From: Amoeboradix gromovi X-113
Taxonomy: Eukaryota; Fungi; Sanchytriomycota
Assembly: GCA_018985225.1 (NCBI GenBank)
Contig: JADGIF010000346.1
Span: 1 to 10,403, forward strand
Length of the DNA: 10,403 nucleotides
Reading direction: 5' to 3'
Positions 1 through 9,046 of the stretch are shown piece after piece. The stretch's first letter is position 1. Every line of letters starts with the position of its first letter. A program made the position numbers and the translations under genes. Under the pieces are notes generated by a model, which made no database searches, was not told where the DNA came from, and saw nothing but the letters and a program-made list of their open reading frames with translations.

Positions 1-94
1 CGTATAATAGAAGATCTTTTATTAATGATAGCATTTCCTCGGTATGATGCACCTTTAAAAACGAGTTAGTCTAGTTTTTATATTTGGTGTCCCA

Positions 95-263: not shown

Positions 264-394
264 TAGCGCTCCTCGCTAAAAGTGCTGATTTCCGAGAAAA
301 CCAAGAATTTCCACAAAGAACCTGAAAAAGACAGTCTCTCCGTTACAGTGATCGCTCACGCTTTCACTACCCTGAGGCGGGATTGAATAAGGAT
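264..394 (-). ncRNA. Putative Fanzor omegaRNA scaffold / transposon right end, copy A
   Basis: Lies directly 3' of the DRDHMAARNI coding remnant and is in the same open frame. 104/115 identical to 8651-8777 outside a variable hairpin top. Similarity stops sharply after ...GAGGAGCGCTA (minus strand). TnpB/Fanzor omegaRNAs are known to occupy this position. Confidence 0.7.
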
Positions 395-705
395 GCAGAT
401 ACTTGATGTATATGTTCCTTGCTGCCATATGATCTCTGTCTATCTCCAAATGACAATTGGTACAATTGTAGGTTTCTAAGCTGGTTCTCTTTAAAGTAGC
501 ATACCTCGTACATGGCATCGAATTTGTTCCTTGGTGCCATGTGGTCCACTTCCAAATGACACTCTGTACATGAATAGCTCTCCAAATTGGTTTTCTTTAG
601 AGTGCCACATATTGTACATGGAATCTAATTCTTCCATGTTTGGACCAGCTTATCAGTCTGAGACGAATGTATGCTGCACCTGCTAGTTACTTCTTTAGAA
701 TTGAT
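395..705 (-). pseudogene. TnpB/Fanzor nuclease C-terminal fragments (zinc finger + RuvC-III), present twice
   Basis: The minus strand reads IPCTICGTLKKTNLESYSCTECHLEVDHMAPRN and then, in another frame, MPCTRYATLKRTSLETYNCTNCHLEIDRDHMAARNIYIKYL. This matches the TnpB/Fanzor CxxC...CxxC...DRDxxAAxNI signature. In-frame stops, a frameshift and the missing RuvC-I indicate a pseudogene. Confidence 0.85.
413..630. repeat. Diverged tandem pair (413-524, 112 bp; 525-630, 106 bp) of the Fanzor ZnF/RuvC-III segment
   Basis: Both units start TGTTCCTTG(C/G)TGCCAT, share TCCAAATGACA and end GTACATGG(C/A)ATC(G/T)AATT. The 6-bp length difference is the loss of the Arg-Asp codons. Confidence 0.85.
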
Positions 706-889
706 TTACCTTTTGCGAAAAGAATTTCGAGTATTTAGGCTATTAAAAAAATCTGGAAAAGTCTTGAAATTATACAAAAATGCATACAAATTCGCGATAA
801 ATAATTTATTCAGGAAAACCACTGAACTACTCGCCATTGAGAACGTCTCCCGACACGAACAACATTAAATTTAGAATTCCTCCTTTGTG

Positions 890-906
890 ATTGGCTGTGA
901 CACGTG
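890..906 (+). promoter_or_regulatory. Candidate RPS20 promoter motifs: inverted CCAAT box (ATTGG 890-894) and E-box CACGTG (901-906)
   Basis: Short motif matches about 40-55 bp upstream of the ATG; function is inferred only. Confidence 0.3.
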
Positions 907-943
907 CGGAATCGATCGGCTAAACATTTAACAAGAGAAATGT

Positions 944-1279
944 ATGGACGAAAAACCAACTGAACTGAAGATTCACAAGATTAGAATTACATTAACTTCT
1001 ACTCAAGTTAAGTCTTTAGAACGTGTAACTTCTCAATTATTAAATAATGCAAAAGATTACAAATTGAAAACAAAAGGACCAGTTCGTATGCCTACCAAGA
1101 AACTAGTGCATACTACTAGACGTACACCTTGTGGTCAAGGTTCAAAAACCTGGGATCGATATGAGATGAGAATTCATAAGCGCGTTTTAGACCTTGAAAG
1201 TCCGGGAGAGATCATCAAAAAGATTACCTCTATTACCATTGAACCCGGTGTAGAAGTAGAAGTCACTATACTTCAATAA
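944..1279 (+). CDS. RPS20: 40S ribosomal protein S20 (uS10)
   Basis: [47 protein letters not shown] and [13 protein letters not shown] are the eukaryotic uS10 signature. The ORF is uninterrupted. Confidence 0.98.
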
Positions 1280-1395
1280 ATAAGCTATAAGCATATATTA
1301 TTTATTCTGTATCCATGAACTTCGTTCTTTTACTAAGTTCACTATACGGATTTTTCCTCTTTCTATTCTAATATCTTCAAGATGTAGAAAAGCCT

Positions 1396-4300
1396 ATGGT
1401 CATGAACAAATTTGTTCCTTCAAGCCACATGAGAATTTTTTCTTCAAATGAAGATAAAGATATTAAATCTAAAAAGAACTTTGTCCCTTCTAAATCAGCT
1501 ACGCCATTGCCAATAAAAACAGCTAGTTTCTTTGAAGGTGAAAATCTCTCGCAGTTACTGATATCTAAAAATGTAGCAGCATCAAAAGCGCGTTTAGACT
1601 TACTCTGCGATATAAACACCTGTGTAGATATATTTGGAAACACGCCTTTACATCTTGCAGTATCAATGAAAGACATTCCGTTCATTATTCTTTTACTACA
1701 AAAAGGCAGCGATATTGATGCGTGTAATAACAGTGGTCAAACGCCATGGGATTTAGCAATTGCTATGAAAGACCATAATGTTTTGGGACTGCTGCTGCTG
1801 TTTAACAATGACATCAACTCGATTAGAACAGATCATCAAAATTTGTTGCAGCAAGCGGAGAATGCTCGTGGTAGATTTATCTATCAGAAGATCTGTTTAT
1901 TAAATACCATTGAAAATAGTGCGAGCCTTGGCCATTTAGAAGAAGTCACCATCAAGCTTCAAAATCGTGAAGTCTTGGAAAGTAAAGACAAAAATGGAGT
2001 CACCATATTAATGCGGGCGTGTTATAAAGGCCACTTGATGATGGTTAGAAAAATCTTCGAATGGGGAGTTTTACCAGAGGTCAAAGATAAGTACGGCTGG
2101 AATTGCTTGTCATATGCGGTGTTCGGCGGCCATCTGGATGTGATAAAATATCTGATCCAGAATAAAAAGATGGCTAAAGTTGGCGATTCAAGCTCTAACG
2201 AGCCTATAGTTATTGCCGCTTACATGGGATTCTACCACATTATTGTTTATTTTGACGAAACTTTTGATATCTTCAAGGTTTCCAAGTTTGTTAGTAAATG
2301 TGTAATGATGGCTGTATGGATGGGACATGTCACTGTAATACAATATCTCAAATATCGTAGATTCTCTAGTGGCGAGGGCAATGGATGGCTTTTAAAAGGT
2401 TGTACATACGTTGACAAGTTTTACGATCATTACTCTTACATGGATGGAATAAAAAAAAATTACAAGTCTGAATGGATCCAACAAGTTGAGGCCATTGTTA
2501 ACGAAAACAATGACTTGTACGCCAAAAGAAAGGTCTTGGTCAGCTACAATGTTGATGAGTCTAGACTAGACTCTGTCAGCCCGAATAAGCCTCCATGTGG
2601 AAATTTAATCCGGCTACATTTTCATTCTTTACCCGAAATCGAGGAGGTTAGACAAAAAGCACATGACATTAAATTGCTGGTAGATGTTCCCGAGGCATAT
2701 CAACCACTGATTCTGTTAGCTAGTCAACGTATTTATTACATAGGCACTTGGCTGGATGAAGAGTACTATCGGGTTGTAGGTAAATTCAGATCTACAATAT
2801 TAAATATCGATGGGGAAGATAAAGCAAATGTCATAGTTCTATCAACTCAAGTCAAAGACGTAATTGAAGAGGTTATCGGTAAAATCGAGAAATTAATAAA
2901 CACCCTAAGCCAGGACAAATCCGGGTTTCTATTTTTATTGAATCCAACCTTTCTCAACCTAGTGAAAGAAGCGAGCAGAAAGATAGACGAGGATGATTTG
3001 AACGAACTTTTGAAGAAAACTAAATTGATCAGCGGAGTGTGGATCCCAGCTACAGCGAAAAAGGAATTTTTAACTTCATTATGCACAATGATGGTCGATT
3101 TCGGGAATCTTATTGATTTAATTAATAGCACAGGAATATTCAACATGTATGTGCTGTTATTTCAGAAAGAAGTACAAAAGCAGAATAGCAACTATACGGT
3201 CAACGTCACAGATGTGGACTATAAGGATTATAAACAAAAGCAATATGAGCAAATACAGCAAGATGCTAGCAAGAATGAAGACATGGCTAGCGACAATGAT
3301 CCTGATGTGCTGTTTGGACAGAGACTGGAGTATTTAATAACCCAATTTGTAACCTCAATAAAACTATTGCGAGTTAGTTTAGGAAGTAGTATTGCGGTTG
3401 GAGATGCTACTAACAAAAAGATCGAGAACGCAGGAAGTGCGGTACACTATGCCTGCGATGCAATAGTAGACGAAGTAATTCAATACGAGCTATTTGGCAA
3501 TCCTGATTTGGTAAATAAGAATGATTTGAGTCCTGCGTTGCGTAACAACATACAAGATATAAGGTTAAATGTTTTACAGCACGGACAGCAAGTTATGCTC
3601 TTGGCAAATGAGATGATCAAGTTTGCTCAACTAGCAAGTGGCAAGTGGCCACCACCTGACAGTAAAGATGCGCTGATGTATTCGCTATCGCCTATAGCAA
3701 GCGAAATAAAAGAATTGGTGGAGGTTTCGAAGCAGGGAGCTACAACAATTCGACAATTAGAAAAACTGGTGATGGAGAAAATGAGTAACTGGCAAAAGTC
3801 GGTTATGCAAACACAGCGTCTGAGCAAGATATTTCAATTCTGGGATCAAAACGATGCTATGCAGGTACAGACTGAATCTGATTATTGGGATGGAACATTA
3901 GAGGAGAAAACTATTATAGGCAAGGATGGTTTAGTCATGGACTTGGTAGTGAAAGGTGGCAGATTAACAAAATTTGTAGAATATTTAACGCATCCTTTAA
4001 AAAAGGACGAAGATTTCATGGCTGATTTTTTCATGACATATCGTACATTTTCTGCACCAGTGGAAGTGTTGGATTTGTTGGTAATGAAATATAACAGTCA
4101 GCCGCCATTCGGCTTGACTGAAGTTCAGTTTATGGCGTTTATGAAGAGACACATAGCACCGATGAGACTAAAAATCGCAGGAATGTTCAGGTATTGGGTT
4201 GATAAATACTTTCAAGAGGACTTTGAACAGGAGGAGTCGCTACTGTTGAAATTGAAACAGTTTATCAATCAAAAAATATCGAAAGACTATGCGAAACATG

Positions 4301-5199
4301 CTTCTGAGATTCTTTCGATATTGAAGCAGCTCGAGGGTGGATATCTACCTCCAGTTGAAAACGCAGTCTCAAATTTAGAAATACCAAAACCATTAGTAAC
4401 CAAGAAGTACAATTTGTCATATATAATAAATGACGTCAGAATTTTGCTCGAGTTAGACCCCGTGGAAGTAGCTAGACAGATCGTATTAGTAGAATATTCT
4501 CTGTTTTATAAAATAAGAGGTAGGGAAACAATAAACCAAGTATACGCCGATACTGCCGGAAAGGAAATAAATTTGTATCCAAATGTTCATAGAATGATTA
4601 GCTTTACCAACCAAATAACCATGTGGGTATGCTCTTCAATGGTGAGCATTACAGATATGAAGACTAGAATACTGATGATGAAGTTTTTCATGAGTATAGC
4701 TATTGCGTTGAGAGAAATACAGAACTTTAATGCTTTAACAGCGATAGTTGCAGGATTGACGATGGGACCAGTTTACAGATTGAAAAAGACTTTGAATAGG
4801 TTGGAGAAAAGCTATCCGAAAGTAAAGGAAGCATATTTAGAGAGTGTAACTATAGTGTCTCCAAAAGGACAATATGCAAACTATAGAAAACATTTAAAGA
4901 CGCTGCAAAAACCAATTTTGCCATTCTTAGGAGTGTTTATAACCGATATGACATTTGTTGATTTAGGGAACAACAACTTTTTACCCGAAAACCATTTTAT
5001 AAACTTTGATAAACGCAGGAAGTTTAGCCATTTGATCAAGGAGCTGAATCAATACCAGAGAGTGCCATTTAATTTTGTGCCAATAAGTTTTATACAAGAA
5101 TATCTGTTTACAGTTAAACCAGAGCAAAACGAAAATAAACTTTTTGAAATGAGTCAGCAAGTTGAACCACCAGAACAGCAGTCTGATGATGACGAGTAA
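1396..5199 (+). CDS. Ankyrin-repeat Cdc25-type Ras guanine nucleotide exchange factor (ANK repeats, helical region, REM/RasGEF_N, CDC25 domain)
   Basis: Ankyrin motifs (GNTPLHLAV, GQTPWDLA, GVTILMRAC, GWNCLSYAV). REM motif (VKGGRLTKFVEYLT..FFMTYRTF). CDC25 motifs (LDPVEVARQI, QNFNALTAIVAGL..VYRLKKT, LPFLGVFITDMTFVDLGN, INFDKRRK). Confidence 0.93.
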   Translation: MVMNKFVPSSHMRIFSSNEDKDIKSKKNFVPSKSATPLPIKTASFFEGENLSQLLISKNVAASKARLDLLCDINTCVDIFGNTPLHLAVSMKDIPFIILLLQKGSDIDACNNSGQTPWDLAIAMKDHNVLGLLLLFNNDINSIRTDHQNLLQQAENARGRFIYQKICLLNTIENSASLGHLEEVTIKLQNREVLESKDKNGVTILMRACYKGHLMMVRKIFEWGVLPEVKDKYGWNCLSYAVFGGHLDVIKYLIQNKKMAKVGDSSSNEPIVIAAYMGFYHIIVYFDETFDIFKVSKFVSKCVMMAVWMGHVTVIQYLKYRRFSSGEGNGWLLKGCTYVDKFYDHYSYMDGIKKNYKSEWIQQVEAIVNENNDLYAKRKVLVSYNVDESRLDSVSPNKPPCGNLIRLHFHSLPEIEEVRQKAHDIKLLVDVPEAYQPLILLASQRIYYIGTWLDEEYYRVVGKFRSTILNIDGEDKANVIVLSTQVKDVIEEVIGKIEKLINTLSQDKSGFLFLLNPTFLNLVKEASRKIDEDDLNELLKKTKLISGVWIPATAKKEFLTSLCTMMVDFGNLIDLINSTGIFNMYVLLFQKEVQKQNSNYTVNVTDVDYKDYKQKQYEQIQQDASKNEDMASDNDPDVLFGQRLEYLITQFVTSIKLLRVSLGSSIAVGDATNKKIENAGSAVHYACDAIVDEVIQYELFGNPDLVNKNDLSPALRNNIQDIRLNVLQHGQQVMLLANEMIKFAQLASGKWPPPDSKDALMYSLSPIASEIKELVEVSKQGATTIRQLEKLVMEKMSNWQKSVMQTQRLSKIFQFWDQNDAMQVQTESDYWDGTLEEKTIIGKDGLVMDLVVKGGRLTKFVEYLTHPLKKDEDFMADFFMTYRTFSAPVEVLDLLVMKYNSQPPFGLTEVQFMAFMKRHIAPMRLKIAGMFRYWVDKYFQEDFEQEESLLLKLKQFINQKISKDYAKHASEILSILKQLEGGYLPPVENAVSNLEIPKPLVTKKYNLSYIINDVRILLELDPVEVARQIVLVEYSLFYKIRGRETINQVYADTAGKEINLYPNVHRMISFTNQITMWVCSSMVSITDMKTRILMMKFFMSIAIALREIQNFNALTAIVAGLTMGPVYRLKKTLNRLEKSYPKVKEAYLESVTIVSPKGQYANYRKHLKTLQKPILPFLGVFITDMTFVDLGNNNFLPENHFINFDKRRKFSHLIKELNQYQRVPFNFVPISFIQEYLFTVKPEQNENKLFEMSQQVEPPEQQSDDDE

Positions 5200-5233
5200 A
5201 ACCCATAAATAAATATTGAAAACCGAGTTTATT

Positions 5234-5363
5234 TAGTTTCTCCTTGTTAATAGCTCTAATATAACAAAAACCCAATAGTTTCCACAGTGTGTCATAAAGA
5301 CAGTCGCTGCGTCACAGAGGTTTCTCAAACTTCCATCATCCTGAGGTGTGATTGAACAAGGAT
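5234..5363 (-). ncRNA. Degenerate omegaRNA scaffold / right end, copy B
   Basis: Collinear blocks shared with copy A and/or C: TAG..CTCCT, TTTCCACA, AAAGACAGTC, CTGAGG, GATTGAACAAGGAT. Clearly more diverged than A versus C. Confidence 0.6.
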
Positions 5364-5372
5364 ATGTACATC

Positions 5373-5495
5373 ACAAGTATACGTCAATAAACTGGTATTC
5401 TTCAGAGCGCGGCATATTTCACAAATTTGACAAGTTAACGCTTCATTACATTCACCAACGTCTTTCTTCTTTTTTTTGCACTTACAATTCAATTT
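5373..5495 (-). pseudogene. TnpB/Fanzor fragment (LxxK...VxxxxExxT..CxxC region), not in the ORF track
   Basis: The minus strand reads KLNCKCKKKKDVGECNEALTCQICEICRALKNTSLLTYTC, which aligns with copy A CTICGTLKKTNLESYSC. The DRD..AARNI segment is deleted and the fragment runs into scaffold B. Confidence 0.75.
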
Positions 5496-5518
5496 TTACA
5501 AGTGTCTTACTTTATTAA

Positions 5519-6505
5519 CTAAGGATTTCCGTAAATCTCAAATATCTTTGATTTAAGGTTACTCCCAGCTCTGATCTTTCTAGCGAACAAAGACGTTGAG
5601 TCCTTCAAATGAGGCACATAATCGTCGAGGCCTAATAAGCATGGCGACCAACCTATAATTGACATTTCTGTGTGCTCAGTCTTACAGTCCAGCCAAACTG
5701 TCCTCATCCAGTCCTGAGAAAATAAAAAATTATTGGATCTAAATGGACTATTCATGTGCAAAGATTGAAAGAATGCTTCATCAGATATAATGTAACTGTT
5801 CTCAAAGAATTGTATCCACTCATTTAGCCATTTCTCCTCTTTTAAGAAATAATTTATAAAGGGTTTGGATAATATGCTCCATTGTGGTCCTTTATAAATA
5901 GGGCCATTTTGGGGGGTCATGGTGTATTTTGTGCACTCATCGTCCATGCAAGTTGCTTCCGATCTTGAACAGGCTTGAATTGTTGGTGAATCTTGTTTAC
6001 AAGTAGGTATATTACTTCCATATCCGGAGTCGTTGCTGAATACAATGCTGTGGTTTAGTGGAATTGCTCTTATTGCATTCTCAATTTGATTTAAAGGTCT
6101 TAATGGAAAGGTTGCTCCATCCAAGTAAACCAAGTGATCGAATTCACAATCTACTCTTGCTAGCTCTATTTGTGCGTGTACTAAACTAAACTGTCCCCAT
6201 GATATGTCATATTGCTTCTTAGTTTCTAAAATTTGTGGATAAAGCCGTTTAAACTTTTTTATAGATTCCAATGGTGTCTTTTTGTCAAAATGCATCACAT
6301 AGCAATGCTCCCTGTTGTATATCTTGTCAAGAAGTTCCAATACTCCATTTATAGATTCCTCTGAGTATGCTAGCATAGCAAACCCAATTTTATTTACTTT
6401 ACTGGGTGCCTTCCCGTCGAATCCAACCTTATAGTCAGGGTTTAGTAATATTACTGTCATTAATGCTATGATAAAATATGATGAAATTGACTGAATTTCC
6501 CGCAT
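5519..6505 (-). CDS. Glycosyltransferase family 14 (core-2/I-branching/xylosyltransferase-like), N-terminal signal anchor
   Basis: Hydrophobic N-terminus. Motifs YVMHFDKK, ISWGQFSLVHAQ, LDGATFPLRP, YKGPQWSILS, DEAFFQS and LFARK are typical of the Branch/GT14 family. Confidence 0.88.
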   Translation of the reverse strand: MREIQSISSYFIIALMTVILLNPDYKVGFDGKAPSKVNKIGFAMLAYSEESINGVLELLDKIYNREHCYVMHFDKKTPLESIKKFKRLYPQILETKKQYDISWGQFSLVHAQIELARVDCEFDHLVYLDGATFPLRPLNQIENAIRAIPLNHSIVFSNDSGYGSNIPTCKQDSPTIQACSRSEATCMDDECTKYTMTPQNGPIYKGPQWSILSKPFINYFLKEEKWLNEWIQFFENSYIISDEAFFQSLHMNSPFRSNNFLFSQDWMRTVWLDCKTEHTEMSIIGWSPCLLGLDDYVPHLKDSTSLFARKIRAGSNLKSKIFEIYGNP

Positions 6506-6547
6506 AGTGGCTTGAACCTAAAAATAAGAATTGTCTAAAGATATTTA

Positions 6548-7324
6548 TTATTCCCATTTCATTTTACCTTTGGTCCAGTTCAGGACACCTTGAGCTTTAT
6601 CTACACTACTTTGCAACAATTCTCGGACTTGGTCCAAATGAGAAATCATTCCATTACCTTTGTTCATTAAGTCCATACATTCTTGCTGCACCTGATCACC
6701 CTCTGCATGCTGTGCGGGCTGCTTCCACACATTTACTAGGTGCATTACCTGCTCCCTCAGCATGTCTTTGTACGGTACAATTCCTCCGTATTGATTTAAT
6801 AAATCCACCATCATGCGCAATAATCTTATAAAGTCACTTTTTATTTCCTGCAAAGCGTAATTAAAACCAACAACAGCATTCTGATGATGATATTGCTGGA
6901 GTGTTGTTGTTAAGTATTGTATATGTATTGTCATTTTATGAATGGCATAGTTAACCCAGTCCAAAAGATAATGGATGGTGTATTTAATTTGATCACTCAA
7001 CACAATTGCACCTCCAGTGGTAGTTGTGATTATAAGGTTACCAATCTGCCCCAAAAAACCTTTATTTTCTCTATCTGATACCGTAACACTAGAAGTGCTG
7101 GTATTCGTCAGCGTTGTATCTTCCGTAATATTCCCTAACAATTCATGAATATGTGGCAGAGTGTTTGGCTTGGGTGAGTCAAATATCGAGGAATCTTTTA
7201 TTCCATTTAATTCTCGTTTGTGTTCATGATAGGTATCTATTAAGCTATCCTGTTTAGACAGAGTATCATCAGCAAGGGAAATAGTGCTGTCAATGTCCAT
7301 TTGAGAAGATGAACTTACTTGCAT
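6548..7324 (-). CDS. Opi1-like transcriptional regulator
   Basis: GGAIVLSDQIKYTIHYLLDWVNYA and IKSDFIRLLRMMVDLLNQYGG..LREQVMHLVNVW resemble conserved fungal Opi1 blocks (recognised from memory). Start set at the ATG (7324) rather than the GTG at 7327. Confidence 0.65.
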   Translation of the reverse strand: MQVSSSSQMDIDSTISLADDTLSKQDSLIDTYHEHKRELNGIKDSSIFDSPKPNTLPHIHELLGNITEDTTLTNTSTSSVTVSDRENKGFLGQIGNLIITTTTGGAIVLSDQIKYTIHYLLDWVNYAIHKMTIHIQYLTTTLQQYHHQNAVVGFNYALQEIKSDFIRLLRMMVDLLNQYGGIVPYKDMLREQVMHLVNVWKQPAQHAEGDQVQQECMDLMNKGNGMISHLDQVRELLQSSVDKAQGVLNWTKGKMKWE

Positions 7325-7384
7325 CACGGAGAAGTCTGTCGCACGATTGGTCTCAAATCAAATGTCCTGAAATTTAAATCCAGC

Positions 7385-7620
7385 ATGGAGCTAGTTTAAT
7401 TTCAGTGAATTCTCGCAAATTTTAAATTTTTGGACACAGTTGTATGTCTAGTAGGCCCACTCTGCTGTGCAGAACACATTGAGGGAATAAAATCTGGTAG
7501 TTACGTCCTTGCAAGATAAAAACGCGGAATTCTTTTTATACTAAAACGATGATTCGATTTATCTATTCGCGCAATATTATAAACTTAAATGAATATTTGC
7601 CTAAAAACTTGAATACGCTG
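7385..7620 (-). mobile_element. Degenerate solo left-end remnant (D) of the same element family
   Basis: GAATTCT, ATGAT, CAATATT and GAATACGCT occur at offsets 0/22/45/84 from 7527, versus 0/22/46/86 from 8850 in element C. 7416-7433 matches 8819-8836 at 17/18. The sequence is AT-rich and the boundaries are approximate. Confidence 0.5.
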
Positions 7621-7747
7621 CTTTAAAATTTAGTAAATCTCATCCAAAACTAAAAATTTGTCTGCAAGTCCAGAGCCTTTTTGATATCAAAATTTTCAAG
7701 TAAAACAATTTTGGAGTCAAAAATTTTGCTACAGTGAAACATCAAAG

Positions 7748-8032
7748 ATGCCTGATGTTCCAATAGATTTTTTGCTCGTAAATGGCCAGCGGAAGGAAAT
7801 GACATTTGATTCAAATTTAACGGTAAATGAAATATCAGAGTATCTGTACAAAAACTGGCCAGAAGAATGGAAAGACAACGCTCCTCCGAATGCGAATAAC
7901 ATTCAGTTTCTTCATCAAGGAAAGTTTATTGATAAGCAAACTAAATTGCCTTTTACAGATAAAACGGTAGTACACCTGGTTATCAGACAGCCTGAGGAAA
8001 CGAAAAAAGAAAAGTGCTGTATGATTATATAA
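7748..8032 (+). CDS. Membrane-anchored ubiquitin-fold protein (UBL3/MUB family)
   Basis: Ubiquitin-like fold motifs (FLLVNGQRKEMTF, NWPEEW, IQFLHQGKFI, VVHLVIR) and a C-terminal CCMII CAAX box. Confidence 0.88.
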   Translation: MPDVPIDFLLVNGQRKEMTFDSNLTVNEISEYLYKNWPEEWKDNAPPNANNIQFLHQGKFIDKQTKLPFTDKTVVHLVIRQPEETKKEKCCMII

Positions 8033-8050
8033 ATTTATAAAAATAAAATT

Positions 8051-8587
8051 TTATTTATTTTTCTCTTCTGCGCTATTATCCTGCCTCACTGGTGACACGT
8101 ACCACTGAAGTATTGCAGATTCTAATTTTTGCAAATATGATTCGCTGTGTGAGCTCTCTGAATATTTCTGAGTGGTGTCTATGGTGTTCCAACCATGGTT
8201 TTCAATAATTGGTTCTACACTTATGCTTCTTTTTATGGGCTGCATTTTAACTGGACTACTTAGCTGCGGAGCACTAGGTGGGTCTGGGTATATTACAGTG
8301 CCAAGACTAGCCTCTAGGTGAATATTTTGAGGTTGTTTGGGTATCAGTATGTATTTGCGAGTGTATAAATGTCTATCTGAGCTTAACTTATTAATTTTTT
8401 TGAGATTCGGGACAGTGACATGATAGAATAGCGCTATTCCCTGTAAGCTATCTGTCTTACATAAAAAATGGACGAAATATTTGTTTGTTATATCTGGTTT
8501 TAAATAGTCAACCTCTGGTAAGGTGTCGTCTGTTAATGGATGTGTTGAATCAGATATGTCTATTGAGGATTTCTGTGAAAATTGCAT
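8051..8587 (-). CDS. LysM-domain protein (LysMD-like, no signal peptide seen)
   Basis: HFLCKTDSLQGIALFYHVTVPNLKKINKL...YILIP is a single LysM motif. Confidence 0.88.
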   Translation of the reverse strand: MQFSQKSSIDISDSTHPLTDDTLPEVDYLKPDITNKYFVHFLCKTDSLQGIALFYHVTVPNLKKINKLSSDRHLYTRKYILIPKQPQNIHLEASLGTVIYPDPPSAPQLSSPVKMQPIKRSISVEPIIENHGWNTIDTTQKYSESSHSESYLQKLESAILQWYVSPVRQDNSAEEKNK

Positions 8588-8650
8588 TCAGACAAATTGT
8601 TTGACGCGAAATTGAATACAAAAAAATTACCCCCAGATTTCATAAATCTA

Positions 8651-8777
8651 TAGCGCTCCTCGTTAAAAGTCCTGATTTCCGAGAAAATCGAGAATTTCCA
8701 CAGAGAAACTAATGCTAGATCTCCGTTACAGTGGTTGCTCACGCTCTCACCACCTTGAGGCGGGATTGAACAAGGAT
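8651..8777 (-). ncRNA. Putative Fanzor omegaRNA scaffold, copy C (best-folding copy by eye)
   Basis: About 90% identical to copy A. Minus-strand stems: UUGUUCA/UGAGCAA, CCGCC/GGUGG, CGGAGA..CUA/UAG..UCUCUG and GAUUUU/GAAAUC. Confidence 0.7.
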
Positions 8778-8945
8778 ACGGGACACACACTACAATAATC
8801 AGATAGAATTCAAATTTCCAAATTTTAATTTTTTGGGTTTTCTAAATCAGAATTCTGTAGAGAGTTCAAAAATGATAGTCACTAAGCTGTAGCATCAATA
8901 TTCACAGAGATATAGCGAGGTAAAGTTTTTTAACGGAATACGCTA
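8651..8945 (-). mobile_element. Non-autonomous MITE-like 'ghost' element (copy C): left end plus omegaRNA right end, nuclease gene deleted
   Basis: Imperfect TIR: TAGCG-ctcct-CGTTAAAA (8651-8668) versus the reverse complement of 8928-8945, TAGCG-tattc-CGTTAAAA. TA occurs at both extremities. Internal parts match the other family fragments in the window. Confidence 0.72.
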
Positions 8946-9014: not shown

Positions 9015-9046
9015 TGGGACACCCAATGTGATTTCTAGGCTAACTC
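9015..9046 (+). repeat. Dispersed repeat fragment, inverted homolog of 63-94
   Basis: TGGGACACCCAATGTGATTTCTAGGCTAACTC versus the reverse complement of 63-94, TGGGACACCAAATATAAAAACTAGACTAACTC: 25/32 ungapped. Confidence 0.55.

Follow-up and report, generated by a model that had tools for sequence, protein, structure and literature searches.

The 10,403-nucleotide (nt) contig JADGIF010000346.1 of the sanchytrid fungus Amoeboradix gromovi X-113, analyzed here over its full length and referred to as the window, carries a segment of ~125 nt at three places on its minus strand, raising the question of what this repeat is and whether it belongs to an RNA-guided nuclease system in a eukaryotic genome. 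A preliminary description, made from the letters of the window, had proposed a Fanzor/TnpB transposon family with three copies of an omegaRNA scaffold, each followed by a different guide-position flank. The copies, here called A, B, and C, were aligned after a repeat search, copy B being ~72 to 76% identical to copies A and C, and the family was followed through assembly GCA_018985225.1 (10.55 Mb in 1319 contigs), to which the window contig belongs. We conclude, with a probability of about 85%, that the three segments are the right ends of high-copy, ~590-bp internal-deletion derivatives of an IS607-type transposon encoding TnpA and Fanzor2, and that these right ends hold a structured guide-RNA region.

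The repeat itself, described as ~130 bp with three minus-strand copies, was borne out well beyond the window. A search of the assembly with the segment returned 652 candidates, the 40 that were scored being 86 to 90% identical. A right-end pattern matched 566 times versus 20 times in the control, giving about 546 right ends, and a left-end pattern matched 417 times versus once, giving about 416 left ends. The density is ~1 element per 19 kb, and the family makes up ~2 to 3% of the assembly. A genome search with Pfam profile PF07282 (Cas12f1-like TNB) gave 560 candidates; all 150 that were scored lay above the cut-off and, on the strand of the segment, matched ~17 nt upstream of it, confirming that segment copies are linked to TnpB-like coding sequence genome-wide. 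In the window, the open reading frame (ORF) beside copy A (276-518, minus strand) passed PF07282 (E = 4.4e-6, 27.2 bits; cut-off, 26.3), which places its peptide in the TnpB/Fanzor family, and it also gave weak NCBIfam matches to IS607_TnpB and guided_TnpB. The peptide of the remnant beside copy B was 51% identical to a preserved family ORF over 41 aa (BLASTP, E = 9e-13). Two of the three copies are thus directly 3' of TnpB/Fanzor zinc-finger remnants, as had been reported from the window.

The family has a sharp, shared 3' boundary, although not at the base read from the window. When ~30 and then 101 genomic copies were aligned, the sequence leading to ...GGACTTTTAACGAGGAG carried 1 to 2 bits per position up to its last base and 0.01 to 0.08 bits thereafter; the information content drops to zero directly after ...TTTTAACGAGGAG (101 genomic copies). 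The true right-end bases in the window are 269 (A), 5240 (B), and 8656 (C), 5 to 6 nt inside the ...GCGCTA previously taken as the end. The additional CGCTA (window 264-268 and 8651-8655) was rejected as part of the element, as the 12-mer CGAGGAGCGCTA occurs only at window copies A and C and nowhere else in the genome. Its presence beside both copies could reflect a local relationship of the two insertions or be coincidental (for one pair, about 1 in 1000). Since CGCTA is flank, the guide-position flanks shift by the same 5 to 6 nt. On the minus strand, from the corrected boundary, they are CGCUAGAUGCUAAAGG for copy A (268 to 253), AAACUAAAUAAACUCG for copy B (5239 to 5224), and CGCUAUAGAUUUAUGA for copy C (8655 to 8640). 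The flanks are unrelated beyond the boundary, as had been stated, but the guides listed earlier were out of register, and the proposal that the scaffold/guide boundary can be read directly from these three copies leads to the wrong base. The first base after the right end varies (A, 34; C, 21; G, 11; T, 35). The last 3 nt of the right end are less well conserved (74 to 88%), with minority classes ...GAGAAG and ...GAGT followed by a variable base, and the crossover site could be hidden there.

The left end is equally sharp, beginning |CAGCT[T/C]GA[C/T]T[A/G]TTTTCTTGAATAAATC in 69 copies, with homology upstream of the segment stopping after ~450 to 630 nt. The sole flank signal, a weak one, was found on this side, with W at position -2 in 58 of the 69 copies and R at position -1 in 56. 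In 63 pairs of left and right ends, the elements measured 450 to 625 bp, mostly 565 to 620, giving an element of ~590 bp that consists of the left end, the last ~100 to 145 codons of the Fanzor2 ORF, and the right end. The short-element ORF reads ...YDLIYLPSFNTSQM...NESFTSQTCTRCG...CTKCHLKIDRDHMAARNIYIKYMHPYSIPPQG...EILDFLGNQDF*, its stop codon lies 8 to 13 nt before the element end, and the RNA region (the final ~125 to 160 nt) lies wholly inside the ORF tail. Divergence across the 63 elements was 5.9% in the right-end domain and 7.7% in the left end versus 12.8% in the interior, the conserved 3' block spanning element positions 436-595. Neutral decay being even, this approximately twofold conservation of the ends suggests that the amplifying lineages were constrained at the ends.

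No target site duplication (TSD) was detected in the 63 pairs (3 of 63 at k = 3; 0 of 63 at k = 5), and the ends, CAGCT... and ...GAGGAG, are not terminal inverted repeats (TIRs); a 10-nt subterminal inverted repeat is common to both. A second dispersed repeat, the 32-nt inverted motif GAGTTAGTCTAGTTTTTATATTTGGTGTCCCA, lies in the window at 63-94 (plus strand) and, inverted and diverged, at 9015-9046. Its arms, 59 in 227 kb of DNA, were found beside loci L013, L017, L020, L022, L025, L069, and others. The family could accordingly be seen as ordinary cut-and-paste miniature inverted-repeat transposable elements, or as Fanzor1-type cargo of a TIR transposon bounded by this motif, given that an arm lies within 400 nt of 19 of the 63 short elements and that the arms are biased in orientation (upstream, 11 of 12 plus; downstream, 8 of 9 minus). 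However, the distances range from 1 to 366 nt and arms flank both sides of only 1 of the 63 elements, for which reason the motif was rejected as the TIR of the element. Together with the lack of TIRs and TSDs and a linked transposase that is an IS607 serine recombinase, this leaves such an explanation with next to no credibility.

The short elements are derivatives of a longer transposon that lost its interior. A Fanzor2-like protein query matched nearly all places over the last ~100 residues only. On contigs C385 and C565, longer copies match the short element at 90% identity between its position 164 and the right end; upstream of this they extend into Fanzor coding sequence. The internal coding region is kept in only 6 places of the assembly, and on contig C46 it is joined to a decayed serine recombinase TnpA. 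Among the 12 Resolvase-domain (TnpA) loci of the genome, the TnpA on contig C459 scored 160.2 bits on NCBIfam NF033518, the IS607 transposase equivalog (cut-off, 110). The Fanzor fingerprint comprises DPG at RuvC-I and, as the alternative RuvC-II residue, a glutamate located six positions before the first CxxC (PMC10711439). With the zinc finger and the D that follows, this fingerprint is free of stops on contigs C542 and C392 and interrupted by one stop each on C689 and C459. The alternative glutamate is seen as NESFTSQTCTRC in the family ORFs and as ECNEALTCQICEIC in copy B, while the first knuckle of copy A is mutated; the RuvC-III motif DRDxxAARNI is readable after the zinc finger in 55 frames (about 100 loci). 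In the window, copies A, B, and C have all lost the DPG region by deletion. The longer copies on C385 and C565, the TnpA link on C46, the nuclease fingerprint, and the IS607-type TnpA together establish the short elements as internal-deletion derivatives of an IS607-type TnpA and Fanzor2 transposon. The claim that this genome carries or carried a Fanzor family therefore holds, and the transposon can be specified further as an IS607-type Fanzor2 unit with a serine recombinase rather than a generic Fanzor transposon.

A single Fanzor2-like ORF is intact; it lies on contig C542 in a single-copy element. Its protein scored 123.2 bits on NCBIfam NF040570 (guided_TnpB; cut-off, 100), and the nearest proteins anywhere are at most 39% identical to it. 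Among solved structures, the best match of the sanchytrid protein was PDB 9b0l, TnpB-like protein L79 (E = 4e-16), which is the mimivirus Fanzor2 structure. The first zinc knuckle of C542 is CxC instead of CxxC (TCICGS; locus L031, about 1590-1680, minus strand), and an N-terminal extension contains a K/R-rich stretch resembling a nuclear localization signal. The TnpA frame of this element has no ATG before the catalytic motif. No further copies from which its right end could be determined were found in the assembly. An exhaustive protein search retrieved two full-length relatives from GCA_013565735.1, P0129 (551 aa, 53% identical) and P0002 (604 aa, 52%), both of which contain the DPG and align into the protein tail.

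At three loci, the TnpA gene is wholly nested, in another frame, within the 5' third of the Fanzor2 ORF, which it overlaps by 614 to 716 nt. Frame analysis placed these at 1476-3491 (minus strand) of C542 (L031, G000:C542), at 2012-3626 (plus strand) of C459 (L040, G000:C459), and at 3122-4964 (plus strand) of L106 (GCA_013565735.1). Over the TnpA gene the Fanzor frame contains 0 stops versus 2.6 to 3.6 expected from synonymous-codon shuffling of TnpA (P = 0.018 for C542, 0.005 for C459, and 0.016 for L106). TnpA is complete at two of the loci, C459 and L106, and there its ATG precedes that of Fanzor by exactly 7 nt; between C542 and L106 both frames are conserved, at 54% and 47% identity. Two proteins may thus be expressed from one eukaryotic mRNA by leaky scanning. 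No description of such an arrangement was found in the literature searched.

The conserved segment lies on the nuclease strand, runs from the 3' end of the ORF to the right end, and stops at the element boundary. In preserved copies, the last ~125 nt form a stable, closed multi-hairpin fold (z = -3.8 and -3.2). The 3' ends of the P0129 and P0002 ORFs fold with the same architecture (z = -3.2/-3.5 and -2.2), in which the conserved GCCU..GGG region pairs at long range with the bases just ahead of ...CUAGGAG, and the resulting helix encloses three hairpins of unrelated sequence. R1, a covariance model derived solely from the sanchytrid copies, matched both relatives over its full length, in the right place and on the right strand, with the matches stopping at ...CUAGGAG (E about 0.002 and 0.007). 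In the resulting alignment, 27 of 37 pairs were changed on both sides, compared with 10.4 ± 2.4 in shuffles (reached in 0 of 500), and the covariation score was 0.281 versus 0.155 ± 0.013 in shuffles and 0.06 to 0.12 with slid partners. The folds computed independently from single sequences agree with this alignment. The long-range helix, which as predicted would engage the 3' end of the scaffold, pairs GCCUC...GAGG here and CCUAG...CUAGG in the relatives (CCUC/GAGG versus CCUAG/CUAGG), 4 of its 4 pairs having changed on both sides. Published Fanzor2/IS607 guide RNAs have three stem-loops, a pseudoknotted 3' scaffold end, and a nonconserved guide of 14 to 15 nt (PMC10711439, PMC13565253), a form that the predicted sanchytrid scaffold would match. 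These findings support the view that the segment is a guide-RNA (omegaRNA) scaffold whose end coincides with the element boundary. One diverged copy (L043, G000:C11, 3416-3537) carries in the loop of hairpin 2 the reverse complement of a family 8-mer (GCTCACGC versus GCGTGAGC); its stem is retained, an A:U pair having become G:C, so that the inversion lies between the stem arms.

An alternative account of the same conservation is that the segment serves as recombinase-binding DNA and encodes the Fanzor2 C-terminal peptide, with no functional RNA scaffold. The ORF does reach to 8 nt from the element end, and the subterminal inverted repeat joins the left and right ends as a DNA feature. Across the three lineages, the only motifs common to the tail peptides are IPPxG and F.EIL.FL, both present in P0129 and P0002, and they coincide with the RNA helices. 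However, the peptide between the motifs is unalignable across the three lineages, yet the DNA keeps two hairpins at the same positions in each, and the two-sided pair changes exceed all 500 shuffles and all slid controls. Moreover, serine recombinases work on double-stranded DNA without any need for hairpins, as established for IS607 (PMC6188088), and the guide RNA is encoded in just this place in all characterized TnpB and Fanzor2 systems (PMC10711439, PMC10530073). As the recombinase needs no hairpins, we read the conservation as acting at the RNA level, overlaid on coding, and consider an explanation by DNA and protein alone very improbable.

The three window copies are decayed and none encodes a nuclease; as fragments, none of them can reach the whole-protein cut-off of NF040570. 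Copy A is a nearly complete short "mini-IS607EU" element of 556 bp (269-824, minus strand), the eukaryotic IS607-type unit having been named "IS607EU" (PMC13565253). Its ends, placed by BLAST and exact motif coordinates, are CAG... at 824 on the left and ...AGCGAGGAG at 269 on the right; reference positions 12-166 correspond to window 818-668, and positions 353-595 correspond to 514-269. The left-end block (668-824) shares 86% identity with the reference and carries a small deletion close to where it starts. An internal 106-bp tandem duplication (438-630, comprising 438-524 and 544-630; 71% identity in the repeat search) repeats the zinc-finger and RuvC-III coding remnant, giving the peptides CTECHLEVDHMAPRN and CTNCHLEIDRDHMAARN, and this duplicated form is apparently shared by other genomic copies (L022, L023, and L029). 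The remnant Fanzor2 C terminus and tail (276-518), assigned by PF07282 and translation, contains ...CTNCHLEIDRDHMAARNIY..., with the second zinc knuckle CTNC and the RuvC-III motif DRDHMAARNIY readable and the first knuckle mutated to CTRY. The right-end RNA domain of copy A, a putative omegaRNA scaffold (269-394), matched R1 at 143.8 bits.

Copy B is a fragment of a diverged subfamily. Its coding remnant (5373-5495, minus strand) retains the alternative glutamate and the first zinc knuckle, and its right-end RNA domain (5240-5363, minus strand), which stops at ...AACAAGGAG at 5240, matched R1 at 74.2 bits (E = 4.5e-15). Copy C is a solo right-end RNA domain (8656-8777, minus strand; R1, 136.4 bits) that is 93.5% identical to the reference, and BLAST with the reference short element found no adjoining coding remnant. 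The solo right ends (window 8656-8777 and L013 2151-2273) are homologous to the family precisely from base one of the folded 123-nt domain (ATCCTT) onward and may represent a distinct class of scaffold-only copies. The folds of all three window copies were no better than those of shuffled sequences (z = -0.50 for A, -0.46 for B, and -1.49 for C). The proposed omegaRNA scaffold is thus supported by stable folds and cross-lineage covariation in the family, while the scaffolds of the window copies themselves are degraded.

Several observations weigh against the interpretation of the segments as right ends of such derivatives with a guide-RNA region. The IS607 hallmark, a GG insertion site with a fixed right-flank base, was not seen in the aligned copies, and no empty sites were available for comparison. 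No Rfam family reached its gathering threshold in the window. Within the family, covariation was at the level of shuffles, and RNAalifold on 32 sanchytrid copies returned almost no consensus structure, as would be expected of copies that decay neutrally. The cross-lineage covariation was obtained from a model-fitted alignment, which favors its own structure, and from two foreign matches that are weak. The scaffold region doubles as an ORF whose peptide motifs are conserved in relatives, and part of its conservation could be at the protein level. No pair of copies exceeded 95% identity, and for this reason the family may be extinct. Finally, a search of the assembly for a full-length, intact member of the family seen in the window returned only the 6 partial places described above; the intact Fanzor ORF ending in the segment that the preliminary description had suggested seeking was likewise not found for this exact family. 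Many contigs begin or end inside elements (among them G000:C1155, C1142, C128, C1229, C925, C432, and C565), and as the repeat family breaks the assembly, intact full-length copies may be unassembled.

Under the preferred reading, the parent would encode a serine-recombinase TnpA and a Fanzor2 RNA-guided nuclease, and the right-end RNA would fold into a long-range helix around three to four hairpins, stopping exactly at the element boundary. By homology with TnpB and Fanzor2, the guide RNA (omegaRNA/reRNA) would be a transcript of this region that includes ~15 nt of the flank. Fanzor2 acting in trans would use this guide RNA to cut the empty site, so that the element is retained or re-homed, and TnpA would perform the actual movement. 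Transcription, Fanzor2 binding, and guided cleavage are all inferred here by homology.

Whether any of this still operates is a separate matter. A presently active OMEGA system, in which the window copies are transcribed into working guides used by an intact Fanzor2 elsewhere in the genome, would fit the intact C542 ORF with its full catalytic fingerprint, the open frames of 143 to 145 aa kept by many short elements, and the preferential conservation of the ends. Against this stand the shuffle-level folds of the window copies and the features of C542 itself, whose tail differs and has no match to R1, whose first knuckle is CxC, and whose TnpA frame lacks an ATG before the catalytic motif. We regard present-day activity of the system as improbable: with no pair above 95% identity, no intact parent among the 6 places that keep the internal region, and these defects in C542, activity is doubtful.

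Among known systems, one of the closest is the mimivirus IS607 element with Fanzor2 (ApmFNuc/L79, PDB 9b0l), which, like the sanchytrid parent, pairs a serine-recombinase TnpA with a Fanzor2 bearing DPG and the alternative glutamate and encodes its guide RNA 3' of the nuclease up to the right end (PMC10530073). It differs in that its conserved noncoding RNA region extends ~200 nt past the ORF (PMC10530073), whereas the sanchytrid scaffold lies inside the ORF tail, and in that it is present in 3 copies compared with several hundred sanchytrid derivatives; protein identity between the two is low. The bacterial IS607 element ISXfa1 with TnpB (PMC10711439) is of the same transposon type and likewise lacks TIRs and TSDs. 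Its reRNA resembles the sanchytrid prediction in being ~150 nt long, passing the right end, and having three stem-loops with a pseudoknot or long-range 3' pairing. However, ISXfa1 recombines at GG, so that the first right-flank base is fixed and part of the scaffold (PMC10711439), while the base after ...GAGGAG is variable in the sanchytrid family, and the ISXfa1 host is bacterial whereas the sanchytrid host is a eukaryote.

Elements that retain their ends and guide region without a working nuclease gene have precedents. Bacterial IS200/IS605-derived miniature elements keep their ends and the guide-RNA region in the absence of a working nuclease gene. The same holds for the extra fRNA copies of the Chlamydomonas Fanzor1 CrFNuc and for nonautonomous Fanzor elements (PMC10530073, PMC3627910). 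The CrFNuc fRNA copies number ~20 and derive from a Helitron/Fanzor1 element (PMC10530073), in contrast to the ~550 right ends in 10.5 Mb, derived from IS607/Fanzor2, described here. SpuFz1/SPu-1 of Spizellomyces punctatus is also a multicopy Fanzor of an early-diverging zoosporic fungus (PMC3627910), but it is a Fanzor1 with 33-bp TIRs and TA TSDs (PMC3627910), whereas TIRs and TSDs are both absent from the sanchytrid family, which groups with Fanzor2 and has a linked serine recombinase.

The family resides in a eukaryotic nuclear genome, as the window contig also bears RPS20, a 1267-aa ankyrin-RasGEF gene, and a ubiquitin-like gene. It further encodes a Core-2/I-branching enzyme and LysM and leucine-rich repeat proteins. 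The window RPS20 groups with a Sanchytrium tribonematis EukProt protein in clustering at ≥90% identity. Copy B sits in a 320-bp spacer separating two convergent genes. The right end of copy C is 68 nt upstream of the ATG of a LysM-domain ORF (8051-8587) on the same strand (spacer, window 8588-8655), and a read-out transcript from copy C would run into this gene.

The genome paper of the sanchytrids does not mention transposons or repeats (PMC8371127), sanchytrids are absent from the supplements of PMC10711439, and no report combining sanchytrids with Fanzor, TnpB, or IS607 was found in the literature searched. The type of system is known, and the principle is not new, Fanzor2/IS607 proteins being established RNA-guided nucleases; this family, its ~550 copies, and its occurrence in the host group Sanchytriomycota appear to be unreported. 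The Fanzor2 lineage is at most 39 to 53% identical to anything on record. A 2023 census found a maximum of 122 Fanzor copies per genome (PMC10530073), compared with about 550 right ends here, which resolve both element ends to the single base and provide about 100 sampled natural flank "guides." The compact, putative ORF-embedded scaffold, with a fold conserved in distant relatives, would make minimal-scaffold design and a cleavage test straightforward.

For the host, one transposon family largely shapes the spacer DNA of a small genome. The ~550 mini-elements might, as an unlikely extension of the interpretation presented above, be guide-RNA-only parasites that feed flank-specific omegaRNAs to a few trans-acting Fanzor2 proteins. 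The parent of these elements would moreover show an adaptation to translation in eukaryotes, its whole TnpA gene being nested in the 5' third of the Fanzor2 ORF with starts 7 nt apart, read by leaky scanning. If this were true, several hundred guides and their targets would be stored, as a natural library, in one compact fungal genome.

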